Source of the DNA: Monocercomonoides exilis PA203
Lineage: Eukaryota > Protista > Preaxostyla
Direction: 5' to 3'
DNA: 64,000 nt
Assembly: GCA_001643675.2 (NCBI GenBank)
Contig: LSRY02000033.1
Span: 744,001 to 808,000, forward strand
The notes beneath the pieces are model-generated. The model searched no databases. It worked only from the letters and a program-made list of their open reading frames with translations, and had not been told where the DNA came from. Made by a program: the position numbers and the translations under genes. Of this stretch, positions 9,302 through 55,086 are shown in pieces; position 1 is the first letter of the stretch; every line of letters starts with the position of its first letter.

Positions 9302-12300
9302 ATGTCATCTCCGATAATTAATCAACTTCTTCAAACAAAACAGGAAGGATATTCACGATTACATCAAGATCCACATTCTCCACTGCAACCTTCTATTTCT
9401 CTTCAGCCAAATACGTTTCAAGCTGAAAGGACGCAAAATGAACAAGATTTCAAAATAAGAAACAGTAAATCTCTCCTTGGAAGAGTCGGACAATTTCTGG
9501 AACAACGAAGACAACTTGAAGAAAAAAATCGTCCTGGAGGTACTTGTGAACATTTGTTACCAAATATCATTTTGGCTTCGATTGAAAACAGCGAAAAAGA
9601 AGAAATACTTCAACCTGAAGAAATTGATCCATACACAGAAAAAAACTTGGTAAGCGACCAACTTTTAATTCGTAAGGATTCTTCTCATCCATTGGACACA
9701 CTTACGGAAAGAGACAGCGAAGAGCAAGAAATTGATGAAATTGAAAAAGCAAACAAAGACTCTCCACAAAAAAGATCAAAATCCCCTTTCAAAAATAGAA
9801 ATAAAAGGCCATTTCCAAGATTAGTGAAGCGTAAGAATAAACCAAAACGACAATTAAAGCCGTTTTTCGAACGTTTAAAAGATGATGAACACGTAAGAGA
9901 AGAAAAAATGAAAAGACTTCAACAAGAAGAAGAAGAAAAGAAACAAAAGGAAATTGAACAGTGTTCATTTAAGCCAACGATAAATGAAAATAAGAAAAAA
10001 GAACATTCACAAACATTGCATCAGAAAGAATTATTCGAAGATGAATCAACTATTCCAACACAGATGAATTTACAGCAGCTTCATCTTCCTTCAGGATTTA
10101 ATGGCATTCCATTCGGTTTTACGAATCCATCGTCAATGATTTTAAACTCATCCACTCAAAATACTCAATCAGTTACACAGCCAAATTCGATTCTTGGGCA
10201 CTCTCAAATGTCAACAACGGACACAGCCACAGTCCGTCAAAACGTGCCTCCTGAAGAAAGATTACTAAATTGGGGAAAGAAGCGAGACCAACGAAATGAA
10301 GAGCTGAAAAGACTTTTTGAAGAAAAAGAAATGGCAGAAGCGACTTTCACACCTGAAACTACACCATTGCCGCATCCAACAACACCTCGTTCTATATCAC
10401 ATGGAAGTACAAGAACAACGCCAATCAAAAACAGTTCAATGGATGAAAAATTTCAGAAACAGCAGCTGTCTGCAAGACTTACTGCGCGCTCAAGTTTTAA
10501 AGATGCTTCAGAAAAGAATGGAGAAGATGGAGCGATTAGTGCACAAAGTCAAAAAGAAAAAGAAACTAATGAAGAAGAATTCTCTGAAAACGAGGAAATT
10601 TCAGAGAATCATCGAGAAGAAACACAAAACAAAACAAAGAAGGCACAAGGCAAGCCCTCTTCAGTTGATGCCTATTTGCAGCTCAATCCATTTTTCCGAT
10701 TGACACACATTTCTCGTCCACGAGATGCTCAAACGCTGCTTCAAATGGAAGAAGAGGAAGAAATGAACAAATCAAAAGAAAGTGATGATAAAGCGAATTC
10801 TACAAAAGAAAAATCATTTCCCGATGAAAATGAGTTGAAAATCAAAAGGCTTCTCAATCAAGAAGTCAATAGCTCTCTTACAACATCAGTTTCATTCCCA
10901 ACTCCATCCAAGTCTCCCAACATAACAATGCAGACACCTTCTTGGCAGCATCCATTTGTTCCGCCGCTGCATCTCTCGCCTCAGCAAGGAAGCTCATTAA
11001 CATCTCCATCTTCGCGTTCTCTACAGGCTCAGCATCAATCATCTCTATCTAACACACCATTCACTAACACTGGTTCTGTTCCACAAAGGCGTCCAAATAA
11101 TCAGAATGTCTTTCAGCAGTCACAGCCACCTCAAACTCCCATGTCTTCCTCTCGTTCCATTTCATCCGCCACTTCAATGAAAACTCCTGTTCAGCTTATT
11201 TCTTCGCAATTCCCTCCTCTTTCTTCTGGATTGCCACAAATACCTCTTCTTTCGTCGAATTTATTCACTCTTTCGCTCTCTTCGAACACTCCATTCACGT
11301 CAGCTGCTTCTGTCTCTCCTTCTCACATGTCCACTCCAATACACCCGCCTCAATCTAATCAATTTTCCACATTGTTGACTCCTCAAACAGACCGTCCGCT
11401 TTTTTCGTTTGACGCATCTTCTGCTCCTCAGAATGACTTCAGTCAATCTATTCCTCAATCAACCACACCAACATATCAGCAGACAAATGCATCAGCTTGT
11501 TCATCTCGCAGCATGCGACCTCAGTCAGCCCGAAGAAGCACAAGAACAACACCCGAGCAGACAAACTCTCAAAGACGTGGGCAGATGTCATATCGCAGCT
11601 CAGCCATGACAACTCGAACAGCCTCATCCGCTTTGACAACACCCAAAATTAGTGTGCCAAAGAATGCTGCAAATGCACAGAATGAACAGAAGAATGGACC
11701 TCCAGCTTCGCCTGGATGTCGTCGCCCGCACACGGCATTTACATCTCCTTCGACTTATTCTCCATCTTTTGTTGCATTTTTGGAGAGGCAGGAAAAAGCA
11801 ATGAGACAGCTGCAGAAAAGGAAATATGGAGAAGAGTTGGCAAACATAAAAGAAAAAGAAAAAATGAAGAAGAAGAGGAAAGAAGAGAGAAGGAAGGAAA
11901 GGGCTGAATGGAGAGAGGAAAGAGAAAGAAGGTTGAAACTGTTTCAGAAACACGAAGAAAAAGAAAGAAGAAAGCAAGAAAAAATGGAGCAATTGAAAAA
12001 AAGACAGGAAGAACGAGATTCTACTCATTTGGATCCAGAACAACAGACTTCAGGGGAAGAAAAAGAAAAAGAAAAAGAGGACGAATACGGAAGCAATGAA
12101 TATGAAACAGATGATGAATCTGAGGAAGAGCTTCTGTCGCTTCTCACAGCAACTCCAGATTCGCTCCAGTCTTTGAGCGAAGAGTCGAGTCTTTCTTCGA
12201 CCATTCTAAATGAATATGACAATGAAGACGATTCAGACAGCAGGATGTGGCGCTCACAACGCTCAGTGTCGACAAGGCGAATGAGCAACAGCCAGAAAAG

Positions 12301-35364: not shown

Positions 35365-38300
35365 ATGCAAGCCGTTTGGAATCTTCTGATTCGAAGGAAG
35401 AAGAAAATGAAAGCAATGAAAGAGTTTGCAAAAGCTGTTTTGCTCATATTATTTTTGTATCATTGTATATTTTTAATATTAGACTGTTGCTGCTCAAGCG
35501 TTATTTCAATGGATTCTTCAGTTGCATTCTCTAATTCAACAATTTCCATGTTTAACTGAAATTTCTCAGCCAACTGGAACAAAAAGCAAAGGTTTTATTC
35601 TATTAATATTAAATGCATGGACGTAAATGTTGTTATTTTTGATTTAATTCATCAAAGGCTTCGCAGAAAAATTTATTGAGATCCTAGAGAATACATTTCC
35701 TGAATCGTATCACGTTAAAGCAATAATGAAGGCCGTTTCAATATGCGTACACATACTTTCAAAGGCTTCAACAAAGACAATAAATGAAAGCAAAGAAATT
35801 GTCAAAAATGAGAATGGATCAACATCGACTGCTTTGGTTAGCAAAAAAACTTATGAAATGCAACAAAAAATAGTTATTTCATTAATTGCCGAAGCATATT
35901 CTGTTTCAATTGAGCAAAAAAGGGATAATGAAATTCTTCAGGAGCGAATAAGTCATTTAACAAAGAAAACAACAGTTAAAACTCCTCCGAAGGGAGAAGT
36001 TTTATCTGGTTCAGTTCTTGAAGGTCTCCAACTTTTGAGATTGAAAAGATTGCATGCACTCCAGGAAAAGATGGCCGAAAGCGGTCAGTCAGTGCCAAAT
36101 AATGAAACATGCTTGGGTGAGGATAATAACGATGCAAATCAAGAAGTGACTCAGTTTGAAGCTTCTTTGAGATACTTTTTGGAGGAAAACGGAATACAGT
36201 CAGAACAAATTGATCAGCTTACAAAATTAAGCGGAAACGATAGAAAAAAATACATTGAGCAATTAATGCCTGAGGAGAATGGTAATGTTCTTGCATTGGG
36301 TGCCTTTCGTTCAACAGTTATTAATGAGAAGCAAATTGATAGCTATACTCAAAATCAGACAAAAAATAATGTCCTGCTTTCATCTCCTCAGTGTTTAATA
36401 TCTCCTTCGGCTACTTACACTTTATCGCCTTTTTCTCCATCTACCTTTTCTCCTGCATCATCGATTTCTCGCTTTTATACGCAATCTCCAGTCAAAAGTC
36501 CGATAGCATACTCACAAACGCATACTCCTGAGCAACTAACTCGTAAATCACCTTTGTCAACATCCTTTTCATCTCCTCTATCTTCAACACCTCTTCATTT
36601 GTCGAGTTCTCAACTTTCTTCACCTTCGGCTAGCGTTTCTTTAACATCTTCTAATTTTCCGTCTCCTTCTGAACATTCAGGCAGGTTATCTCCTTCTTCA
36701 ATTTCTATGGCAAGTTGTAATTCAAACTCTTCTGCTTCTTCATTTTACTCACCTGTTCCATCATCTTTGTCTCCTGCCTCATTCACTTCATATCCTTCAT
36801 ATGCTTCTCTAAAGAACAGTTGGCCAAATTCACCAGTAACTCCTTCATCTTTGTCTACAACAAGAAGTTCTCTTTTATCATTTCCTGAATGTTCTGAATC
36901 AAAAAGTGCATCTGAACTTCCTTGCACCAATCAAAGCCCTCCTCAGACGGTACTAAATCAATCTTCTTCAGAATTACTCAAGCCTATTTTAAAAGAAGTG
37001 CCATGCACTTCACCTTTTTCAACAAAAGACTTTCCAGTATCATTCTCTTCGACAATGTCTTCCGTATCGTCTCGTGAGTCAACTATATCTTCTGTTGAGG
37101 AAATGATGCTAATGATAAATGGGAAAAAATCATGCTCAAATTTCTCACCTGCTTTGACGAAGTCTGTTGCTTTATCGCCTCTTGCTTCTCCATTGACAAA
37201 AGTTACAAATTCACAAAGTGTAATGAATACTTCGAATACAACAAACATCACAATTGTGTGTGGAGAAAACCAAATGAATAATCTTATTTGTAATGCGCAA
37301 AAGAATGAAATGGTAGACACTGAGTGTCAAACAGAAATTGTTAGCGAGTTTAATAATTGCTCAGGTGGTAATGAAAATATAACTGAAGACGAAAGAAAGG
37401 AATTATTAAATAAAGGAAATGAAGATAATTCTATTGCTCCGAATGAATTTCAACAATTTGAAACATCACTTCTAACAAAACTGTCTTCCGAACACTCTCA
37501 ATTCGGAGAATTAATTCCCCTTTTGACAACTTCAGAACAACTTGTATCTTCCATTTCCTTCACACCATCTCGACCTTCAATGACAAAATTCACTTCGCCT
37601 GCGCCAATTGTTAGCACTTTCATTTCATCCACTTTGAGTAATTCTTCTGCTTCATCATCATCTTCTTCTTCTTCTTCTGAAGCATCAACTACAAATAGTG
37701 CTGAGTCTTTATCCATTTCACCATCAACACCATCTGATTGTGATCAATTAACAAACTTTTCAACACCCGAATCAAAGAAAAAGCGACAATCTTCATTTTC
37801 AACTCCCTTAAATCTTACTGACGCTTCTCATATTGAAAAGAATAATCATTTCGAAAATGATGATAGTAATCAATATGCCTCTTCTCTTCTCCCTCTGATA
37901 TTGTTTATAAATAATTCATCTTCTCTTCATCAATTTACTGATTCATCTTCAGCAATCTCAGCATTTCTTCTGAGATTTCTCGTTCTTGTTTTATATTCGT
38001 TCTCATCTGATGTTAATCAGTTATCATCAAATTTAAAGTCTGCAACATTGCCATTTTTCTGTGCACAAAAGCAAAAAGAAAAAGCAATGAAAGAGTTGAA
38101 AGCAAGATTTTGCACGATGTCAAACGAATTAAACGGAACTAGTAATGTTCAAAGCGACGTTTCACAAGAATGTATCAAACAGGAATTCGCAAACAGCTTA
38201 GAGACAGAGAATATTAGAGCTGACCAAATAATGCAAAAGAATGAATCGATTAAGGAAAAGATAACAAATGCAGATTCTGAACAACATTCAAATGGAAGTT

Positions 38301-38725
38301 TAATTTCAAATGGTCCTTTATTAATGTCCTCACTTCTTTCCTCTTTGCTCTCAACAATTAAAAATTCACAAAAGAGAATGGAAGAATCTTCACAAACAAA
38401 CTGTGAATGTGCTTTTGATCAAAGCAGCGAATTTGCAGATATTCTACCTCTTCTTCGATCCCTTGCACTTTGCATTCATTTACCTCTCAGTTCATTGCAA
38501 CAATTGTTATTATCTTTGAAGCAGACAGTGGAAGTTGCAGAATATTCGGTTGCAACTGAAGGGGAATGGATAAATGATGTGAACAAATGGATGAAAGAGG
38601 CTTCAGAAACTTTATCTGAAAGCATGAAACAAATGGAAAAAGCAATTTTACAAATGCAAGTTAAAAAAGATGCCAAAAATAACAGAAAGAAAGTTGCACG
38701 GAAGACAGAAATATCTGGAAAATAA
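35365..38725 (+). CDS. Ser-rich/coiled-coil hypothetical protein; probable join(35365..35436,35483..35591,35658..38725)
   Basis: 999-aa ORF from 35726. Two upstream GT-AG introns can join it in frame to the ATG at 35365; the upstream exons are tentative. Confidence 0.55.
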
Positions 38726-40753: not shown

Positions 40754-41339
40754 TCTTGAAAAACAGATTTTTTCAAATAAAATTTAATAATAACAATTAT
40801 TAACTCATTTTGTTTTGTTTTTGTGAAATTTTGGATTTTGTTAGTCTTTGTTCAATTCTTTTTTAGATTTTTTTGGATTTCGTCATTCAACGTTAGGCAA
40901 AAGTCAATGTTCAAATTAAAAACTTTCTTTATGAGATGTTAAAAAAAATTGATTTTTATTTCTCAATGTCAGTTTGATTAATCACTTTTAAATTCAGACA
41001 TTCTTTCGATTTTTGTTCAAAAAATCTTCCATATTGTGAACAAAGATAATAATGATGCTTACAAAAAACAAAAAATGATCAAAATTATTCCATTCAAAGA
41101 TAATAAAACAATAAAGACTCCAACAATATCGACTTTTTAGAAGAGGATCAGTCATTTCCTTTTTTTCACTCAAAAAACAGCACTAATCTATAAGTTATAA
41201 ATGCAAACGTATGTTCGATGAATATTTTTTTTCTATTGATATTTTCACTCTTTTATCAAAACAAATGGAAAAGATCACTGTATAATCATGTTTGCCTTTT
41301 CGTTGTTTTGATGATTATCATTTTATTGAAAGAATTTCT

Positions 41340-42472
41340 ATGAAATTGCTTCTTTTTGTGCTATATTTTTTTGTTGGTTTTTGTGATTATATGGGGTCTC
41401 ATCCAGTTTATTCGTTTATGTCAACTCAAATTCGACAAGCGGTTGGAGCAGGAAGATGGTTCGATTCAAACGGAGCATCATTGAAAAGGGAAGTTGAAGG
41501 ATATATTAATTCTGCTGCTGTTCCTGAAATTAGTGGTAGAATTGTCGTGGGACTTGCACCACATGCTGGCTTTCGTTATTCTGGCCCAACAGCTGGATTT
41601 ACTTTTCGAGCTCTCAGAGATCAGCCAGAATCGATGAAACCAGATGTTCTTGTTATTGCAGGTTTTCCTCATCATGCAAGTTTAAGAGGCTGCGCGGTGA
41701 TGGATGGAGATGCAATAGAAACTCCAATTGGGCGACATCCAATAGATATGGAATCAGCAACTTTCCTTTGCAGTTTTCCAAGTATTGAGTTCGCATATAA
41801 ATATCACAATGGAGAGCACAGCGCCGAAAACGAGATTCCTTTTGCCCAATGTGCTCTTCCAGGTGTACCAATTGTTGTCGTTCTTGTTGGTGATGAAGGT
41901 TCAGTTCCGCTAGCAAACGCACTAATAGAATTAAACAAAAAGAAAAAAGTCTGTGTAGTATGCAGCACTGATATGTTGCACGATGAGGATTATGACAAAG
42001 TTTATAAAGTTGACGCAAATACCTTAGAGTTGACAGAAAAAATGGATATTGAAGGATTGAAAAAGAAGTGGTCTTATGATCATCAAATTTACTGTGGAAT
42101 GAAACCTGTTATGGCAGGAATGTTGTTTGCAAAAGCATTGGTGTGATGTTATTATATACAATCACATAATATTAACTTTTCAAACAAAATTTAAAATCTT
42201 TTTGTAATTTCTAACTTTCTAGGGCTGCACAAAATCTACAATATTAAAGCATGCATGGTTTGCATTTGTATTTTCTAAAAATTATTTAATATTATGAAAC
42301 ATTAAATTTTTTTCTCGCTTTTATAAATGTTATTTCGAACAAAAACTGATTCAAATTTTTGACGCGTTGATGACAAACAAAAAATTAATCATTATTCATT
42401 TTTAGTTCAGGGGATGGAAAAGAAGATCGTTCATACAACGTTGGCTACGGTTCTGTTGTTATGACAATCTAA
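41340..42472 (+). CDS. MEMO1: MEMO1/AmmeMemoRadiSam protein B family; join(41340 or 41418..42140,42223..42257,42406..42472)
   Basis: Motifs IRQAVGAGRWF, APHAGFRYSG, GFPHH, ETPIG, HNGEHSAENEIPF, STDMLH and YCG, plus C-terminal CSGDG..NVGYGSVV assembled across two in-frame introns. Confidence 0.88.
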
Positions 42473-42806
42473 GGCAATGTTAGAGATGAAAAAACAAATG
42501 TTATTCGTAAATCAACTCGATCTTATCTTTTTGCTCTCTCTTCTTGTTTAATGTTTCATTTCATTTTACAACGTTTCGTTTCTCATCATTCTAGCTTTCA
42601 ATCATTCGCAATTTTAAAAAAAAATCAAAATATGAAAAATCTCAAATACAACAAGCATATCTTCTCAAGTCTAAATTTTTTTACTATTTTAATGTATTTC
42701 ACAATATTTACAAAAACAATGAAAACTTAAAAAAAAAACGAAAAAGAAGGAGGTGGAGAAGGAGAAGGAGAAGAAAAAGGATGAAATGGAAAGGATAGAG
42801 AAAGAT

Positions 42807-43878
42807 TCAAGAATAGAAGATCCACGATGCAGCGCCTCGATCAGCACCAGAAAATGTGCCTTTCTTGCTGCTCACATGTTGCTCTGTATGCACATAAAAA
42901 TTGTCAAAAAAGAAAGAAAGAAGCAATAAAGATAGAACAGTTAATTAGCAAATCCAAAACAACGGCAAGCATATGTTCATATAAGTTGATAGCGTAAGCT
43001 TAAAAAAAAGAAAGAAAGAAAGAAAATATGTCACACCTCGCGGCTTTTCATAATCTGCTGGGCCAGGTGTATGTTCTTTGGGAGGCGTGTCTCTCCTCGC
43101 TTTTCCAATTGTTGCTCGAAATGCTCGCGGAGAAGTGACTTCTGGCGCAACAGGGCCAATTGGAGGTCCAGAAACGGATGTGTCTCGAATCAACGATGAT
43201 TGCTTTGGTGCACGCCCAATTGTTGCCCGAGGGGACTGTGGATGATAAGATGCCTTGGTTTCATCTGGGCTAAATTCTCCTGGTCCCGGAGAAATAGTTG
43301 TTTTATTTGTTGTTCTCTTTTCCGTTCCAATACGAGCAGCCGGAGCATGAGGAAGTATTTTATCTACACTTTCCCCAGTGTTATATACTGGTCCTGGTGA
43401 TCGCTCAAATCGATCGACAGTGTGCTCAAATCTTCAAGGGATGAAAAGCAAAAGAAAAGAAGTCAAGTAGACCGTTTTTGGCCCAATACTTATGAAATTT
43501 AGGTAAAAACTTAATATAGCGCAAACAAAGGATCTGTTGGATCCATAAAATTCCTAGTTTTCAGAGCTGGATCCCTGCCCCGTGAAGAAGATCGGGACCG
43601 TCTTGTTCCTCGTGAAGAACGCGTCATTGAATTTGACCTTTCACGGGATCGAGAGCGTCTATTTTCTCCATCACGAGTTCTCGCTGAACGTGATTCTGAT
43701 GTTCTAGGAGATTCTGTTCGTGGAGGATATTCCACTGGGTTTGATTCTTCAACTTTATTATCAGACTTTATTCTGTAGGTTCAACAATTGTAAATTGTCG
43801 AAGTATATTCATTCAAAAAGGATGTTCACATTAAATAATTGTAATAAAATCAAACCCTTCGCATTGTTCGCTGCTCAT
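42807..43878 (-). CDS. SHIPPO/ODF3-like PGP-repeat protein, copy 1; complement(join(42807..42883,43037..43431,43527..43772,43856..43878))
   Basis: Mirror image of copy 2, with the complete coding region inside the left arm. Confidence 0.7.
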
Positions 43879-44108
43879 TATTTCTTTTCGGTTTTATTTT
43901 GCTATACGCGAAGTTATAAATTGTTATTTTTAACTATTTTCCTAATATTATGGTTGTCAAGTTTTCATCATTTTTTTGTTATTAACAATCATAAATACAT
44001 CATTAGCGAAAGATTCATTGTAAAAGATTACAACCATAATATTAGGAAAATAGTTAAAAATAACAATTTATAACTTCGCGTATAGCAAAATAAAACCGAA
44101 AAGAAATA

Positions 44109-45180
44109 ATGAGCAGCGAACAATGCGAAGGGTTTGATTTTATTACAATTATTTAATGTGAACATCCTTTTTGAATGAATATACTTCGACAATTTACAAT
44201 TGTTGAACCTACAGAATAAAGTCTGATAATAAAGTTGAAGAATCAAACCCAGTGGAATATCCTCCACGAACAGAATCTCCTAGAACATCAGAATCACGTT
44301 CAGCGAGAACTCGTGATGGAGAAAATAGACGCTCTCGATCCCGTGAAAGGTCAAATTCAATGACGCGTTCTTCACGAGGAACAAGACGGTCCCGATCTTC
44401 TTCACGGGGCAGGGATCCAGCTCTGAAAACTAGGAATTTTATGGATCCAACAGATCCTTTGTTTGCGCTATATTAAGTTTTTACCTAAATTTCATAAGTA
44501 TTGGGCCAAAAACGGTCTACTTGACTTCTTTTCTTTTGCTTTTCATCCCTTGAAGATTTGAGCACACTGTCGATCGATTTGAGCGATCACCAGGACCAGT
44601 ATATAACACTGGGGAAAGTGTAGATAAAATACTTCCTCATGCTCCGGCTGCTCGTATTGGAACGGAAAAGAGAACAACAAATAAAACAACTATTTCTCCG
44701 GGACCAGGAGAATTTAGCCCAGATGAAACCAAGGCATCTTATCATCCACAGTCCCCTCGGGCAACAATTGGGCGTGCACCAAAGCAATCATCGTTGATTC
44801 GAGACACATCCGTTTCTGGACCTCCAATTGGCCCTGTTGCGCCAGAAGTCACTTCTCCGCGAGCATTTCGAGCAACAATTGGAAAAGCGAGGAGAGACAC
44901 GCCTCCCAAAGAACATACACCTGGCCCAGCAGATTATGAAAAGCCGCGAGGTGTGACATATTTTCTTTCTTTCTTTCTTTTTTTTAAGCTTACGCTATCA
45001 ACTTATATGAACATATGCTTGCCGTTGTTTTGGATTTGCTAATTAACTGTTCTATCTTTATTGCTTCTTTCTTTCTTTTTTGACAATTTTTATGTGCATA
45101 CAGAGCAACATGTGAGCAGCAAGAAAGGCACATTTTCTGGTGCTGATCGAGGCGCTGCATCGTGGATCTTCTATTCTTGA
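44109..45180 (+). CDS. SHIPPO/ODF3-like PGP-repeat (axonemal-type) protein, copy 2, 246 aa; join(44109..44131,44215..44460,44556..44950,45104..45180)
   Basis: Exons sum to 741 nt in frame. Repeats: SPGPVYN...APAARIG, SPGPGEF...SPRATIG, RATIGKARR...TPGPADY. Arg/Ser-rich N-terminus. Confidence 0.75.
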
Positions 45181-45745
45181 ATCTTTCTCTATCCTTTCCA
45201 TTTCATCCTTTTTCTTCTCCTTCTCCTTCTCCACCTCCTTCTTTTTCGTTTTTTTTTTAAGTTTTCCTGGTCTATGTTGTTATAGTTATTTATTTTATTC
45301 ATTTCAAATTATAAAATCAAGTATAATTATAAGCGATGAAAGCTTAAATTACTTTTTTATCACAAAAAAATACTGAAATCGATCAGGCGATCATGTTCAA
45401 TGATGACTTGTTGCTGGGAAATGAATATAAAAATGATTGGAAATTTTTAACTATTGAAAAAATGTTGGAAGAAAGATAACTATCCCTTAACTTTCATTCC
45501 AGTTGACTCCATAATCTGAAGAACTATTTGAAGAAAGAATGCACGCATACAAAAATGAGAAACCAAGATTCAAAGAGAAGAAGAAACACAACAAAAAACC
45601 GAAAGTTAAAATGTCTCTTAGAACAAAATATGAGTCCCACTTTAGAAGATTAAAAATGCTTGTTGTTTGATTTGGCATTGTTGAGGCAATGAATAAACTG
45701 AATGATGCTGAACACACGGGCCCAAGTGCAACGAAGTCTATCATT

Positions 45746-48700
45746 TTATTTAGGCAAGTTTTCTACAATCGGCTGTGGTACCATGCAAGGCTTGATGTTC
45801 CAAATCTTCTCTGAATAGTCGATGATGGAACGGTCAGAAGAGAACTTGTCCATTCTGATTGATGTAAGGATTGCGCGCTTGCCCCACTCCTCCTTCTTCG
45901 CCCAGTCCTGCTCGATCTTCCTGTGTGTCTTGATGTAATCCTCGAAGTCCATTGACACCAAATAGTGGTCGCTGTGTCTGATTGTATCTGTGAACTGCGA
46001 GAAGTCTGATGGGTTTCCAAACATGCCTCCGTCAATCGCATCCAGTGCAGCTGCAAGTGACGGTGGGAGTGTGTATGATGGAGAGTGTCTTCTCCCGCGT
46101 GCCTCGTCGATCTCTTCTGCTTTGAGTCCAAAGATGTATGCCTGGTTCGCTCCAATCTCTTCCACAATTTCGATGTTGGCTCCGTCCCATGTGCCCACGA
46201 GCAGAGCACCGTTCATGCAGAACTTCATGCAGGAGGTTCCTGATGCCTCATAGCCAGCAGTTGAGATCTGTTCTGAGATATCAGCAGCAGGGATGATGAT
46301 TTGTGCAAGCGAAACACAGTAGTTCGGGATGAACACAATCTTCAGAGCATCCATAATAGACTCGTCCTTATTCACCACATTGCCCACTGCGCAGATAAGT
46401 TTGATCGTCTTCTTCGCCATGAAATAGCCGGGTGCTGCTTTGCCACCAAAGATAACAACTTTCGGCGGGCGTTTCAAAAGTTCAGAGCGGCTCAGTTTCT
46501 TCAGCTCCAAGTATTCATAAATGCACCTCAGGATGTTCAGACTCTGGCGCTTGTATTCGTGCAGCCTCTTCACATGCACATCGAAGATCACATTGTCCAG
46601 CTCCTCTCCTCTTCTCATCACAACACCTGCTGCAGCTGGGTTACCTTGTCCGCACTCACGCTCAATCACCTCTGCCAGCTTCTCCTTGGCCATCCTCTTT
46701 ACATTCCAGAACTGTTCAATGAATGCTTTGTTGATCATCCCTTGTGCCTCAATGCGGCGTAGTACTTTGTATGCCACTGTCCATCTGCTTCCAACTTTGG
46801 AGTCATAAAGCTGTGCAAGTGGTGGATTTGCCTCGAGCAGCCAACGTCTTTGAGTTACTCCGTTTGTCACATTCAGGAATTTCTCTGGGAATATTTCATA
46901 GAAGCGCTTGAAGATTGTCGTTTTCAGCAGCTGTGAGTGAAGCTCGGCCACACCATTCACTTTGGAGGAGGTGACAATGGCAAGATTAGCCATACGAATG
47001 CACTTGACTGGATATTCCTCCACAATTGAAAGCTCTCCCATGAATGCATCGTATTTCCCTTTGATCGACTCCAAGAAGACGTGGTTGATGAGATAGATGA
47101 TCTCCAGATGTCTTGGCAGCATCCTTCCGATCAGGTCCACTGGCCATTTCTCGAGCGCTTCTGGCAGCACGGTGTGGTTAGTGTATCCAAAGCATCCCTG
47201 AGTGATCTTCCATGCCTCGTCAAATTCAAAGCCCTTCTCATCCATCAAAATGCGCATAAGCTCAGGAATTGCAAGGACTGGATGTGTGTCGTTGCACTGC
47301 ATCATGATCGACTCTGGAAGTGAGGAATAAGGCTTTCCTTGCTTCTCAAAGCGGCGGATGATATCTTGCAGCGAGGCGCAAACAAAGAAGTACTGTTGCT
47401 TCAGTCTCAGCTCTTTGCCGGCTGTGAATGCGTCGTTCGGGTAGAGCACTTGTGTAATCGTCTCTGCCTGCTGCTTCGCTCTCACTGCATCATCGTAGCT
47501 TCCTCTGTTGAAAGAGGATAAATCGAACTCGTGTGAAGGGACAGATTCCCAAAGACGCAAGTTGATTGTGTTCAGTGTTCTGAATCCGGCAATTGGCACA
47601 TCGTACGCACGTGCAACAACTTCATCTCCACCAACCCATCTCTTTCTGATGCGTCCTGTCTCTTTTTCGATGTTTTCTGTGACTTCTACCCATTCGAATT
47701 CATCGTCTTCATCGTCACTGGCTGAGGAAGGAACTGACGATGACGATGCGCCAAGTTGTGCGCGTGGGAGTGGAGCTGAGTCAGCAGACATCATCTGTGT
47801 TGAGAAGCTGCTCGAGGAAGCAGCATATGTTGATGGCAACGCTGAAGCTGATGTTGAAGAAGAAGCGGATCCACATGAAGATGCCTTCCTTCTTCTCACC
47901 ATTCTTTGTTGAGGTTCAATTCTTTTCTCCTTGTATTCTTCCACGTGTCCAAAGTATCGAACGTTATATTTCACATCATTTCTCTGAATTTCCCAGGGGC
48001 ATTCATTTTCCAGCCAGTAATCTGGCATTTCAATCTGATCGCCATCGGGAGAGATCTTTTGTTTGAACATTCCGTACTGATAGCGAAGGCCATAACCCCA
48101 CGCCGGCAGACGCAACGATGCCATTGAGTCCAAGTAGCATGCAGCAAGACGCCCAAGACCTCCATTTCCAAGTCCCATATCTATTTCCTGCTCAGCAACT
48201 TCTTCCATCTTCAATCCAATCTGTGAAAGAACACTGGTGTATTCATTCATCACAGTAAGGGATAACATGTTTGAGCGCAAAAGTCTTCCGATCAAATATT
48301 CGATGGAAAGATAATAGAGTCTTTTGGGATTCTTTTCGTGAAAGTGACGATTTGTATCATTCCACAATTCTGTTGATAATGAATTGCAATTTTTTAGAAA
48401 AGCATTGTAATTTAAAACAAAAAAAAATTAAATCATACCAATCAATCTATCACGGATGCTTAGGGCTGTTGCTTGATATGCAACACCCAAATCGAAAGAC
48501 CATTTTGTCCTTGCACATCTGAATTCAACATGATCGCAAATAGATTGAAGAATTGATTTGGTGTCTAAACAATTTATAATTGTAAACAAATTCACGTAAA
48601 TTTTGGATCATAAAAAATTTTTATTTATAATAAACAGAAAATTGACAGAAAAACCATTTTGCAAATATTGTCTTCTCATTGAAAAAAGAAGATTAAGCTT

Positions 48701-49390: not shown

Positions 49391-51661
49391 GTGCCTGAAC
49401 AAACATCGCGGCTTATTTCGAATGAAAATGATAGTCCAAAAATTACGGTCAGTAATATGTTGAATAATCGATTTTTAAAAGCAAATATTCTTCCTGTTGC
49501 ATCTGAACTTTTATTTTCTTCGGCATCTTCAACATTTCAAGGTGCAGGTTCATCAAATAGTTCGAGAGTTGATCCATCCTTAGAAGTAACTACATATTTG
49601 AATAATTATAAAATTAAAAAACAGACTCCAGTTGATTCTTTAATGGATAAATCAATCCATTATTTTCCTTCTTCTTGCACATTTTTATCTTCCAAAGATA
49701 ATGAAGATGTCCAATTATCTTTATCACCAAATAATCGAAAATCTGGAATAACAACTTCTAGTCATGGGCAGCCAACTTTATCAATTGACAATCTCGGGCT
49801 ACAAATGGAGGAAACTTACGAACCTCGTGTTTTGCCTGAAATTTCTGAGGAAGAAGCGAATGAAAAGGAGATACAGCTACTTTTTCAGAAGATGGAGAAT
49901 ACGAAGCATGAATCAGGTTGGAAAAGTGCATTTGAAAAACATGAAACAATATTAAAGACCAGGTGGTTTATTCAAGCAATCAGCGATGAGGCAAATGCTT
50001 TTCTTGGTTTGTGTGACAGAGGAATGAATCTCACAAAGAATCCAAGCGGCAATAAAACTGCTGAAGATGATCAAACAAGAGATAGGATCATAAAGCAATC
50101 AATAAAAGAGGCACGCCATTTTTACAAGCTGTTTGGTAAATGGATCTCTAAAGATAATTACATTGATGAGAAGGAGAAGAAAATGTGGGAGGAGGCAGAA
50201 ATGAAAATGATTAGAAAGAAAGAGAGAAAGGAAAAGGAAAAGGAATCAAAGCAACACCAGAAAATAACAACTGAAGAGATAAAAACAATGCTGAATATGG
50301 CAGATCCATCGACATTATCCGAAGGAGATAAAATAAAATATCAAAAAATTATTGAAAAAAGAGAGCGGAAGACTGAAAAGAAAGAGCAAATGAAGCGAAT
50401 GACGGAGCAAGTTGACGAATGCACAGTCTTTGACGCAAACAGCAAGAGTATGTCAGACAACAAAAAGCTTAAGAAATCAGAATGCATCAATGAAAATTTG
50501 ATTATTGTTACTCCATTTTGTTGCAACTGGAATGAAGCCTTTATGTCAGCACTGCCATCGTCTGACTTTTGTCAGCATAAATCTGAACTGCAAAGTTTGT
50601 TGTATTCATTAGACAACACTTCTATTCCCAATTGCGAAAAATCTGTTGATCAAAGCCAAATCTATCTTCTTCAATCATTGCAGCAAAATGATCAATCGGA
50701 AGAAATGCCTGAAAGGATATTAAGCAATGAAGAAGCTTCGAGTTCTCTGACAGATCATTTAAACTTCAATTTGCCAGAAAATATGCTACTTTGTTGTGAC
50801 TCATCATTTTATACTTCAAATTTTCAGCCATCTTCAGATTTGATGGTTGGTTCAGTTGTATTAGATGAGGAAGAACTTCTTCCAGTGAAATTTTCTCATT
50901 TGACAGATTTGTGTTCTCAAACGACAACTTCTTTCGATTCATCGTTGAAATCAGACTCTTCACTTTTTCATTCGCAAATGCGCTATTCTTTGGAGTTGTC
51001 TAATGATTCATCATTAACGATTGATCCTAATCAACAATTGAACTTTCCATCGTCTCAGTTGCTTCAGTCAAATATCCAACATATTTCCACAAATTCTGTT
51101 TTGAACAAAACGAGTTCTGAAAAAGAATCGCTTCAACAGCTCATGTCAAATCCGGTTTTTCGTAATAAACATTTAATAGATTTGAGCAATCAAAGCTCTT
51201 TGTCTGACTCTAGCACATTGGAATCAAAGATTGGGCCTAATTTTTCTTCAAGTCATTTTGCTTTGCATCTTTCACCTTCGGCTGGTGGTATTTCATCTCC
51301 TTCTTATTCCAATCAGAAAGTGTATCAATGGCCAAATACGTTGGTCGATAAGCAAACAAATTTGTCCAGCAAACTTTCATTAATAAAAGAAATTCAAAGC
51401 TCAATCAAAACATTTGACGCTTCATCTTCACCAAATGAAGTTGCGATGTTTCAGTCGGTACCAACTCCGAACACTTTTTCTTCAATTCCTTGTTCATCTA
51501 CAAATAAAGCTGATTCTGCAACATTATCAACATTTCATTTTTCATCGCCCTCGCAAGCCACATTTCAACCAACGCTTGTGCTTCAGCGTGTTCAGTCTTT
51601 GAGGGGTACAATGAGCGATGATAGCGTTGATCTATTCTCAATTCTCAGTGAACCAAAATGA
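49391..51661 (+). CDS. Hypothetical protein, lineage-specific family member B (start uncertain; first in-frame ATG at about 49457)
   Basis: 756-codon ORF sharing a ~120-aa block with the 32713-35166 ORF. Confidence 0.6.
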   Translation: MPEQTSRLISNENDSPKITVSNMLNNRFLKANILPVASELLFSSASSTFQGAGSSNSSRVDPSLEVTTYLNNYKIKKQTPVDSLMDKSIHYFPSSCTFLSSKDNEDVQLSLSPNNRKSGITTSSHGQPTLSIDNLGLQMEETYEPRVLPEISEEEANEKEIQLLFQKMENTKHESGWKSAFEKHETILKTRWFIQAISDEANAFLGLCDRGMNLTKNPSGNKTAEDDQTRDRIIKQSIKEARHFYKLFGKWISKDNYIDEKEKKMWEEAEMKMIRKKERKEKEKESKQHQKITTEEIKTMLNMADPSTLSEGDKIKYQKIIEKRERKTEKKEQMKRMTEQVDECTVFDANSKSMSDNKKLKKSECINENLIIVTPFCCNWNEAFMSALPSSDFCQHKSELQSLLYSLDNTSIPNCEKSVDQSQIYLLQSLQQNDQSEEMPERILSNEEASSSLTDHLNFNLPENMLLCCDSSFYTSNFQPSSDLMVGSVVLDEEELLPVKFSHLTDLCSQTTTSFDSSLKSDSSLFHSQMRYSLELSNDSSLTIDPNQQLNFPSSQLLQSNIQHISTNSVLNKTSSEKESLQQLMSNPVFRNKHLIDLSNQSSLSDSSTLESKIGPNFSSSHFALHLSPSAGGISSPSYSNQKVYQWPNTLVDKQTNLSSKLSLIKEIQSSIKTFDASSSPNEVAMFQSVPTPNTFSSIPCSSTNKADSATLSTFHFSSPSQATFQPTLVLQRVQSLRGTMSDDSVDLFSILSEPK

Positions 51662-53150: not shown

Positions 53151-53476
53151 GGTAATTGAAGAATCAAATGAATTTTCAATTATTTATATTTATAAAACAA
53201 ATTCTTTCGTTTTATTCAATCCGGATAATTATTTTGGAAATCATAACTTTTTTCAGTTTGTTGATAGTTTGAAGGTTTCTTTCTTTTGAAAAGGGAGTAT
53301 TTTTTTCAAAAGAAAAATAAATAATAACTGTTTGATAATTCGTTGTTTTTGACAATGTTAATGAAAAATTATCTATGAACAGAGTTATTATTAGTAAGTG
53401 CTCATATGTCAATATTCAAAGTAATTAGACAAGTTATATTTTTTGCAGAAGTAATAAAGATTCAATTATAATCATC

Positions 53477-54379
53477 CATCTCTAAAACTTCCTATTTTCT
53501 TCACGCTTTCTTGAACATTTCATTTTGTTCAGCATTTCACTCTGAACAAAAACGTTAATATTTTATAATATAATTTTTATAATTTTTTATTTTCCAAATT
53601 CAATAACAACTCAACTTTTTCTGCTTTATTTATAGATTCACAACATAAAATTTTTCAATAAATTGAACTGAATATTTGATATAATTCATTGCTGTTCAAA
53701 AAATATCAACCAAAAAGTTTTATCCAAAATTTATAATTCAATTCATCGATTGAAAATGTTTTCTGATGAAGATTATAATTTTTGTTGAGTTTTTAAGCTT
53801 TGATATTCTTTTCCAATGCAAACATTAATTATTCTATTTAAATTGAAGGAATATTTTAATCGAATGAATAAGGACAAATGAACTTTTTTGAAAAGATTAT
53901 TTATTGCATGTTAATAAAAAATTACAAATTATTCAACAATTAGCACACGGAAAAAAATATATTTTCAAAAAAGTTCATTTGTCCTTATTCATTCGATTAA
54001 AATATTCCTTCAATTTAAATAGAATAATTAATGTTTGCATTGGAAAAGAATATCAAAGCTTAAAAACTCAACAAAAATTATAATCTTCATCAGAAAACAT
54101 TTTCAATCGATGAATTGAATTATAAATTTTGGATAAAACTTTTTGGTTGATATTTTTTGAACAGCAATGAATTATATCAAATATTCAGTTCAATTTATTG
54201 AAAAATTTTATGTTGTGAATCTATAAATAAAGCAGAAAAAGTTGAGTTGTTATTGAATTTGGAAAATAAAAAATTATAAAAATTATATTATAAAATATTA
54301 ACGTTTTTGTTCAGAGTGAAATGCTGAACAAAATGAAATGTTCAAGAAAGCGTGAAGAAAATAGGAAGTTTTAGAGATG
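53477..54379. repeat. Non-coding inverted duplication: arms 53477-53894 and 53962-54379 (418 bp each), 67-bp spacer
   Basis: Paired positions sum to 107856 (e.g. CATCTCTAAAACTTCCTAT at 53477 vs ATAGGAAGTTTTAGAGATG ending at 54379). First mismatches at 53476/54380 and 53895/53961. Confidence 0.93.
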
Positions 54380-55086
54380 ATTAATTTTAATGACATGTTT
54401 CATTTTTCAATTTAGTAATTTTTGGCATTCACCTGCTTTTGGAAAAAAATGAAAAAAAAACCCACTAACAAATTCGATGAGCTACTGTAGATATTTTCAA
54501 ACAAGATAATAGACGCTTAACAAAAACTCGTCACTTCAAATGAAGAAATAATGTTAAACAACCGAAAAAAGAAAAACAATAGCAAACATTTGTTCTTTTT
54601 ATCGAAAAAATTGAGGGTTCTCCAAAAATGCCGCTTTGCAAATAATTATAAAAAGACCACAACAACAATAAAAATCTTGCAAAAAAGTTCAAGTGAAATT
54701 AAAAAAAAAAAAGGCAAAGCATGGCATACTCATTGAGCCCAAAGTTTATGTAAAGTCAATAACATGATGTTTCCTTGCTATTGACTCAGCTTATTAACAT
54801 TAGCCCAGAAAAACGAATAATTTTGTTACAAAATATTATCAAATTTGAAACTTTATAAACTATTTTCTTTTAAACAAGTATTATTTCTAAAAAAATAAAG
54901 GTCACAAACATTCAAATATTTTGAAAAGGCTTTGTCTTACAACAAACGATCTTGAAAACAGCTGCTTGTAACCTTCATCCAGCCGATTTTTATTAATCAG
55001 ATCTTTAAGACTCTCCTTTAACATGTCAACAGTTATGAAAAAATCCAACCTTCTTATCCTATTCATTATAAAAAAGTCCACCTGGA

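Follow-up and report, generated by a model that had tools for sequence, protein, structure and literature searches.

How two apparently identical genes came to lie head to head in the nuclear genome of Monocercomonoides exilis PA203, an oxymonad gut protist that lacks mitochondria, is the question raised by a palindrome on contig LSRY02000033.1 (assembly GCA_001643675.2). The palindrome was analysed within a window of 64,000 nucleotides (positions 744,001 to 808,000 of the contig, forward strand), and coordinates given without a contig refer to this window. It is probable that the locus represents a real and young local inverted duplication, which arose by fold-back or template-switch repair. 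A first-pass annotation of the same DNA had described a whole-gene palindrome, in which two apparently identical genes stand on either side of a short spacer and point away from it, and had explained it either by a recent fold-back duplication or by an older palindrome homogenised by conversion between its arms. The description proved correct down to the single base, and both explanations remain live.

In a base-by-base comparison, the left arm (42721-43957, minus strand) was the exact reverse complement of the right arm (44030-45266, plus strand), over 1237 bp with 0 mismatches and with a symmetry sum of 87987. Such a perfect inverted match is far beyond chance. Each arm contains one complete copy of the gene, preceded by 79 bp before the ATG and followed by 86 bp after the stop codon. 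These distances, the spacing of 230 bp between both ATGs and the presence of a homopolymer (A10/T10, 42729-42738 in the left arm) in both arms agreed with the values of the first-pass annotation. An automated repeat search had returned arms of 1276 nt with 99% identity, because it extended into weakly matching flanks. The arms are separated by a spacer of 72 bp (43958-44029; 22% G+C), which lies between the divergent genes and is presumed to be their shared promoter region; it is non-palindromic, and its self-complementarity is at chance level. The arm sequence occurs at only these two sites in the whole 82.3-Mb genome, and the centre of the palindrome (43880-44107, 228 bp) is present once. 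At the outer ends, no direct repeat or target-site duplication was found; the contexts are AACAAT on the left and CTGGTC on the right. Likewise, no match to a nanopore-adapter-like sequence was obtained within the window, spacer included. The palindrome lies in the interior of a contig of at least 808 kb, as follows from its coordinates, with different unique genes on either side. High-identity inverted copies, an unduplicated spacer, different single-copy flanks and the lack of a dispersed repeat family are the features of an inverted segmental duplication.

The right gene copy (44109-45180, plus strand) consists of four exons (44109-44131, 44215-44460, 44556-44950 and 45104-45180) and ends with the stop codon TGA at 45178-45180. 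The left copy (42807-43878, minus strand) is its mirror, with exons at 43856-43878, 43527-43772, 43037-43431 and 42807-42883, as given by the mirrored coordinates and by the same BLAST blocks. Both copies are annotated as adjacent genes (MONOS_17836 and MONOS_17837, either of which may be the right copy) with one identical product of 246 amino acids, so that a single protein sequence is represented by two GenBank and two RefSeq accessions. The gene model was searched exon by exon, and the full-length protein was identical with a database entry (246 amino acids, 100% identity) found by the search with exon 3. The four-exon structure proposed in the first-pass annotation was borne out by transcripts: four spliced contigs assembled by Logan from RNA sequencing (RNA-seq) data (ERR12411572, ERR12411573, ERR12411574 and ERR12411804) contain an uninterrupted reading frame of 741 nt and align to the window in four blocks, which confirms the splice sites.

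These contigs also allow the two copies to be distinguished. The observed mRNA of the right copy extends from 44048 to 45335 on the plus strand, with its 5' end 61 nt before the ATG and with 3' ends at 45326-45335. The RNA contigs cross the arm boundary at 45266/45267 with 100% identity and continue for 60-69 nt past the arm into the unique right flank. Against the left copy, the alignment breaks down at the arm boundary, where mismatches set in and the match ends at about 42710. Since the contigs extend into sequence which is present only on the right side, the right copy is transcribed, and the junction between the arm and its right flank is present in data that are independent of the nanopore assembly. 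The right copy is therefore expressed. None of the four RNA contigs could be assigned to the left copy, and left transcripts ending inside the arm would be indistinguishable from those of the right copy; expression of the left copy is presumed. The 3' ends of the right copy appear to predominate among the transcripts, because an equally abundant variant with the left flank would normally break de Bruijn contigs at the boundary.

The longest observed 5' end (44048) leaves only 18 bp of arm sequence before it, so that the two copies face the asymmetric spacer in opposite orientations. If this 5' end is mirrored, the longest 5' ends would be located at 43939 and 44048, about 109 bp apart within the 230 bp between the ATGs; here, too, the RNA contigs were assigned to the right copy only. 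The poly(A) signals of M. exilis are AAUAAA and AAAUAA (assembly paper, PMC8767320). No exact copy of these motifs was present 20-30 nt before the ends of the right-copy transcripts or at the mirrored site on the left, and the 3' sites of both arms therefore give no help in deciding which arm is the original one. The first-pass annotation had proposed a doubled dosage from one shared promoter; the pair could at most double the putative gene dosage.

Judged by its sequence, the encoded protein belongs to the SHIPPO/STPG (ODF3/CIMAP-like) repeat proteins and, among these, to an oxymonad subfamily; it is probably associated with axonemal or flagellar microtubules. The SHIPPO assignment had already been made in the first-pass annotation. 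In Pfam it is only marginal: the full protein only just reached the cut-off for the SHIPPO repeat (SHIPPO-rpt, PF07004; 20.1 bits vs 20, in two stretches), and exon 3 alone scored 16.9 bits. The assignment holds by way of the homologues. A HMMER scan yielded 46 relatives, more than half of which (25 of the 46) carry PF07004 at E ≤ 0.001 (best value 1.3e-44); the closest include four proteins of Blattamonas nauphoetae as well as proteins from assemblies of sequencing runs. Fourteen relatives have in common an arginine/serine-rich N-terminal third, three invariant P-G-P-x-x-Y motifs and a conserved K-G-T-F...W-I-F end, and the residues P102, G103, P104, Y106, G139, P140, G213, P214 and Y217 are invariant across them. 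The profile built from these 14 relatives matched STPG2 of Tetrahymena (8g2z, a structure of the ciliary doublet microtubule) with an E-value of 4.7e-5 and CIMAP1B/ODF3B with 0.0099, whereas the match of the single sequence to ODF3/CIMAP1A was weak (E-value 0.017-0.02). With 246 amino acids, the protein is similar in size to SHIPPO/STPG proteins such as ODF3/CIMAP1A, CIMAP1B and Tetrahymena STPG2 (about 250-300 amino acids), with which it also has several S/T-P-G-P-x-x-Y motifs in common; a P-R-A-T-I-G-like stretch comes after every one of these motifs. The protein differs from ODF3/CIMAP1A, CIMAP1B and STPG2 in the arginine/serine-rich N-terminal third and the C-terminal K-G-T-F...W-I-F, which are common only to the close relatives. 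In a relative with 60% identity, found in the Logan assembly of SRR13490893 (1300 bp), the third intron is missing, so that exons 3 and 4 are fused; the arginine/serine-rich exon is still followed by an intron-like interruption.

For the origin of the pair, the following course of events is proposed. A DNA break or a stalled replication fork would yield a resected or nascent 3' end, which would fold back or switch strand and thereby leave a loop of 72 nt as the spacer. The 3' end would then be extended by about 1.2 kb, with its own locus as the template, before being rejoined to the other side; an interstitial copy of this kind needs two joins. The outcome would be two identical SHIPPO/STPG genes which are transcribed outward from a shared AT-rich centre. 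We infer both the repair mechanism and the young age of the event. A lineage that lacks Ku-dependent end joining should be more prone to such fold-back events. A search for the Ku domain (PF02735) gave no match in the whole genome of M. exilis, while Ku was detected in a control genome, and Ku70/80 and DNA-PKcs are reported to be absent from metamonads (Salas-Leiva et al. 2021).

The closest parallel to this mechanism is provided by the fold-back inversions of yeast, in which inverted copies likewise surround a short unduplicated spacer and classical end joining is absent (Al-Zain et al. 2023, PMC10622511). In yeast, fold-back priming with loops of more than about 12 nt escapes Mre11, and the spacer of 72 bp is far above the 12 nt below which hairpins are efficiently opened by this nuclease (PMC10622511). 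A defect of the hairpin-opening nuclease was considered as well; judged by Mre11, which is present on contig 34, it was rejected. In contrast to the locus described here, the inversions of yeast are duplications on a chromosome scale, which arise via a dicentric intermediate (PMC10622511). The 1.2-kb copy in M. exilis is rejoined to a normal right flank, and synthesis must therefore have ended early, with capture of a second end. No short inverted repeat that might have seeded the event can be identified, because it would now lie within the perfect arms. Either of the two possible ancestral orders gives a plausible tandem arrangement of genes.

With regard to the age of the pair, the other family members of M. 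exilis are 42-55% identical and occur singly on other contigs. The four relatives in B. nauphoetae, the nearest genome available, are also single, dispersed and non-syntenic, and neither paired copies nor Memo or phosphorylase genes, which are the neighbours in M. exilis, were found around them. Of all duplications in the family, this one is thus the most recent by a wide margin. Beyond the arms, no significant similarity was detected: local alignment of the 500-nt flanks was at chance level, and anchored gapped alignments were not significant against shuffled sequences. The sharp boundaries, with nothing significant beyond the arms or in the spacer, fit a young event. A longer, diverged palindrome around the perfect core was considered and ruled out by these chance-level alignments, which leaves only an ungapped in-register signal (17/30, see below). 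Furthermore, the SHIPPO-family gene BLNAU_15409 of B. nauphoetae is closely followed on its downstream side by an inverted repeat of 516 bp with 99.6% identity and a spacer of 511 bp (positions 9730-11272 of a segment of JARBJD010000152.1), so that inverted duplications of young age may occur in a related oxymonad, too.

A second perfect palindrome is located 8.2 kb away from the gene palindrome, with arms of 418 bp at 53477-53894 and 53962-54379, 0 mismatches and a non-palindromic spacer of 67 bp. It is non-coding (21% G+C), both of its arms are unique in the genome, and its geometry resembles that of the gene palindrome. This second case of a perfect palindrome in unique sequence points to a recurring natural process. 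For comparison with the inverted repeats of the genome at large, an unbiased sample of 200 kb was examined. Inverted repeats were frequent in it, and all three long ones (99-99.8% identical) belong to multi-copy families. The first, on contig 7 (within 602996-610000), is a unit of 2.9 kb that recurs as inverted pairs at several places on this contig. The repeat on contig 1 has ends of 410 bp, which are paired at distances of 3-13 kb on many contigs and thus resemble the terminal repeats of transposons. In the third case, on contig 27, the arms are composed of repeats resembling miniature inverted-repeat transposable elements (MITEs).

Several observations weigh against a young duplication by fold-back repair. 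The microhomology at the joins, as read from the sequence, amounts to 0-1 nt and carries no mechanistic signature; the sequence is therefore silent on which arm is the copy. Complete identity of the arms is in itself insufficient proof of youth. Just outside the arms, 42691-42720 and 45267-45296 match in register at 17 of 30 positions, where about 9-10 are expected (9 ± 2.4 in shifted registers), before the similarity falls to background. Moreover, a small number of true arm differences could have been lost in ten rounds of polishing with Pilon, as short reads map multiply to the arms, and the left junction (42720/42721) and the centre are supported by the assembly alone. The last two points would also suit an assembly artefact, in which a single true copy received its second arm from a fold-back chimeric read or a misjoin, or, in a milder form, two non-identical copies were homogenised by short-read polishing. 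Template-complement chimeras of the fold-back type do occur in nanopore data, the 64-kb window contains two perfect palindromes whose spacers both measure close to 70 bp, and the authors of the assembly reported poorer polishing of multi-copy regions (PMC8767320). This assembly (101 contigs, about 82.3 Mb or 82,301,135 bases) was made with Canu 1.8 from native SQK-LSK108 ligation libraries (about 12.9 Gb, read N50 8.9 kb) and was polished with Nanopolish and the Pilon rounds mentioned above, for which MiSeq reads free of the polymerase chain reaction (PCR) were used (PMC8767320). The libraries were thus native and unamplified, chimeric reads were filtered, and the reads, several times longer than the structure of 2.5 kb, are easily long enough to span it. 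If a chimeric read were the source, the arms should continue to the end of the contig; instead, they stop after 1237 bp and give way to unique genes that differ between the two sides. Adapter-like matches are absent from the spacer, an ordinary AT-rich stretch of genomic DNA, and the right junction is present in four RNA-seq assemblies of another project. In addition, the A10/T10 run lies within 20 nt of each outer boundary, where reads from the unique flanks can be anchored, and it agrees in both arms. An artefact is therefore very unlikely. The amplification artefact, which the first-pass annotation had named as a real alternative, is unlikely in view of the native nanopore libraries, the PCR-free Illumina reads, the position in the interior of the contig and the right junction in the RNA-seq contigs.

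If the palindrome is real, it might still be old and owe its identity to frequent gene conversion between the arms, i.e. to intrachromosomal recombination. The 0 differences over 1237 bp, introns and untranslated sequence included, would be consistent with this, and so would the in-register matches, as the second palindrome also shows 17/30 just outside its arms (53447-53476 vs 54380-54409), again followed by background. These matches could be remnants of eroded arms, could reflect homeology that served in the outer join, or could be due to chance. However, they are weak (z about 2.6 each with local composition), gapped anchored alignments are not significant, and there is no gradient toward the boundary, as slow erosion should give. 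A diverged outer or inner shell of homology is absent, and no relative has a paired copy, as all paralogues in Blattamonas and M. exilis are single. The palindromes of mammalian sex chromosomes (e.g. PMC6790999) similarly carry whole genes in near-identical inverted arms around a spacer, with conversion as a candidate process. Those palindromes measure tens of kb to Mb, are shared between species and are demonstrably old, whereas the arms described here measure 1.2 kb and the structure is not shared by any relative. An old palindrome kept by conversion, the main rival of the young duplication, is hence considered unlikely. The locus might also be a mobile fold-back element, i.e. a transposon with terminal inverted repeats of 1.2 kb and a captured host gene, as the genome of M. 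exilis is rich in hairpin-shaped elements and in transposons with long inverted ends. With these MITEs and fold-back transposons, the palindrome has the mirror architecture and the high arm identity in common. In contrast to them, its centre is unique, and its cargo is a small single gene and no member of the giant receptor-kinase family. The unique centre also excluded a MITE or transposon at the middle of the palindrome. Since the arms and the centre are confined to this locus and the outer ends lack a target-site duplication, the mobile element is rejected as extremely unlikely; a transposase is absent, too, and the ends of the arms fall within untranslated parts of a gene that is expressed and otherwise ordinary.

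Both neighbouring genes point into the palindrome, as stated in the first-pass annotation and supported by Pfam. On the left, a gene of the Memo family (41292-42472, plus strand; PF01875, E-value 7.4e-33) converges on the arm; its last exon is located at about 42406-42472, and its stop codon lies about 248 bp from the arm. On the right, a glycogen phosphorylase gene (45746-48367, minus strand; PF00343, E-value 5e-284) with an open frame of 873 amino acids ends 480 bp from the arm. The block of Memo, palindrome and phosphorylase is flanked by two long serine-rich open frames (35726-38725, 999 amino acids; 49391-51661, 756 amino acids), for neither of which a Pfam match was found. The occurrence of TGA in GAA-rich repeats had raised the idea of an alternative genetic code with TGA as a sense codon. 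This was rejected, as the long coding frames are free of in-frame TGA; the repeats are no sign of recoding, because they represent the off-strand of a minus-strand gene.

The convergent neighbours are of importance for the hairpin RNA of about 1.2 kb which the first-pass annotation had expected from read-through. Read-through of the gene pair itself cannot produce it, because both genes are transcribed away from the centre; a hairpin would require read-through of the Memo or the phosphorylase gene. Four genes with a Piwi domain are present in the genome (contigs 8 and 28, and two on contig 47), so that a hairpin RNA could in principle be processed. A more far-reaching proposal, which we regard as rather unlikely, is that both palindromes with spacers of about 70 bp were formed recently by fold-back copying of a stereotyped kind. 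This process would be exceptionally active in an oxymonad without Ku, and it would regularly supply new gene copies that already possess divergent promoters. As an alternative or in addition to this, convergent read-through from the Memo and phosphorylase genes would give rise to the 1.2-kb hairpin RNA, by which Argonaute/Piwi proteins might tune the expression of a flagellar gene.

As a kind of duplication, the locus is ordinary, namely an inverted duplication of one gene at an interstitial site, small, clean and of textbook form. The text of the assembly paper (PMC8767320) contains neither 'palindrom' nor 'inverted', and a literature search, judged by titles and abstracts, gave no report on nuclear palindromes of Monocercomonoides. 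Its gene is complete, its centre is unique, its ends are sharp, and transcripts distinguish the two copies. The main value of the locus is that of a well-defined test case, in which the copies are distinguished solely by a 3' flank of about 65 nt. Two questions can readily be addressed with it, namely whether expression of a new inverted copy can start from the opposite side of a very small AT-rich promoter, and whether palindromes of this type give rise to double-stranded RNA. With the adjacent 418-bp palindrome, the locus supports a picture in which fold-back duplication shapes the genome of M. exilis.

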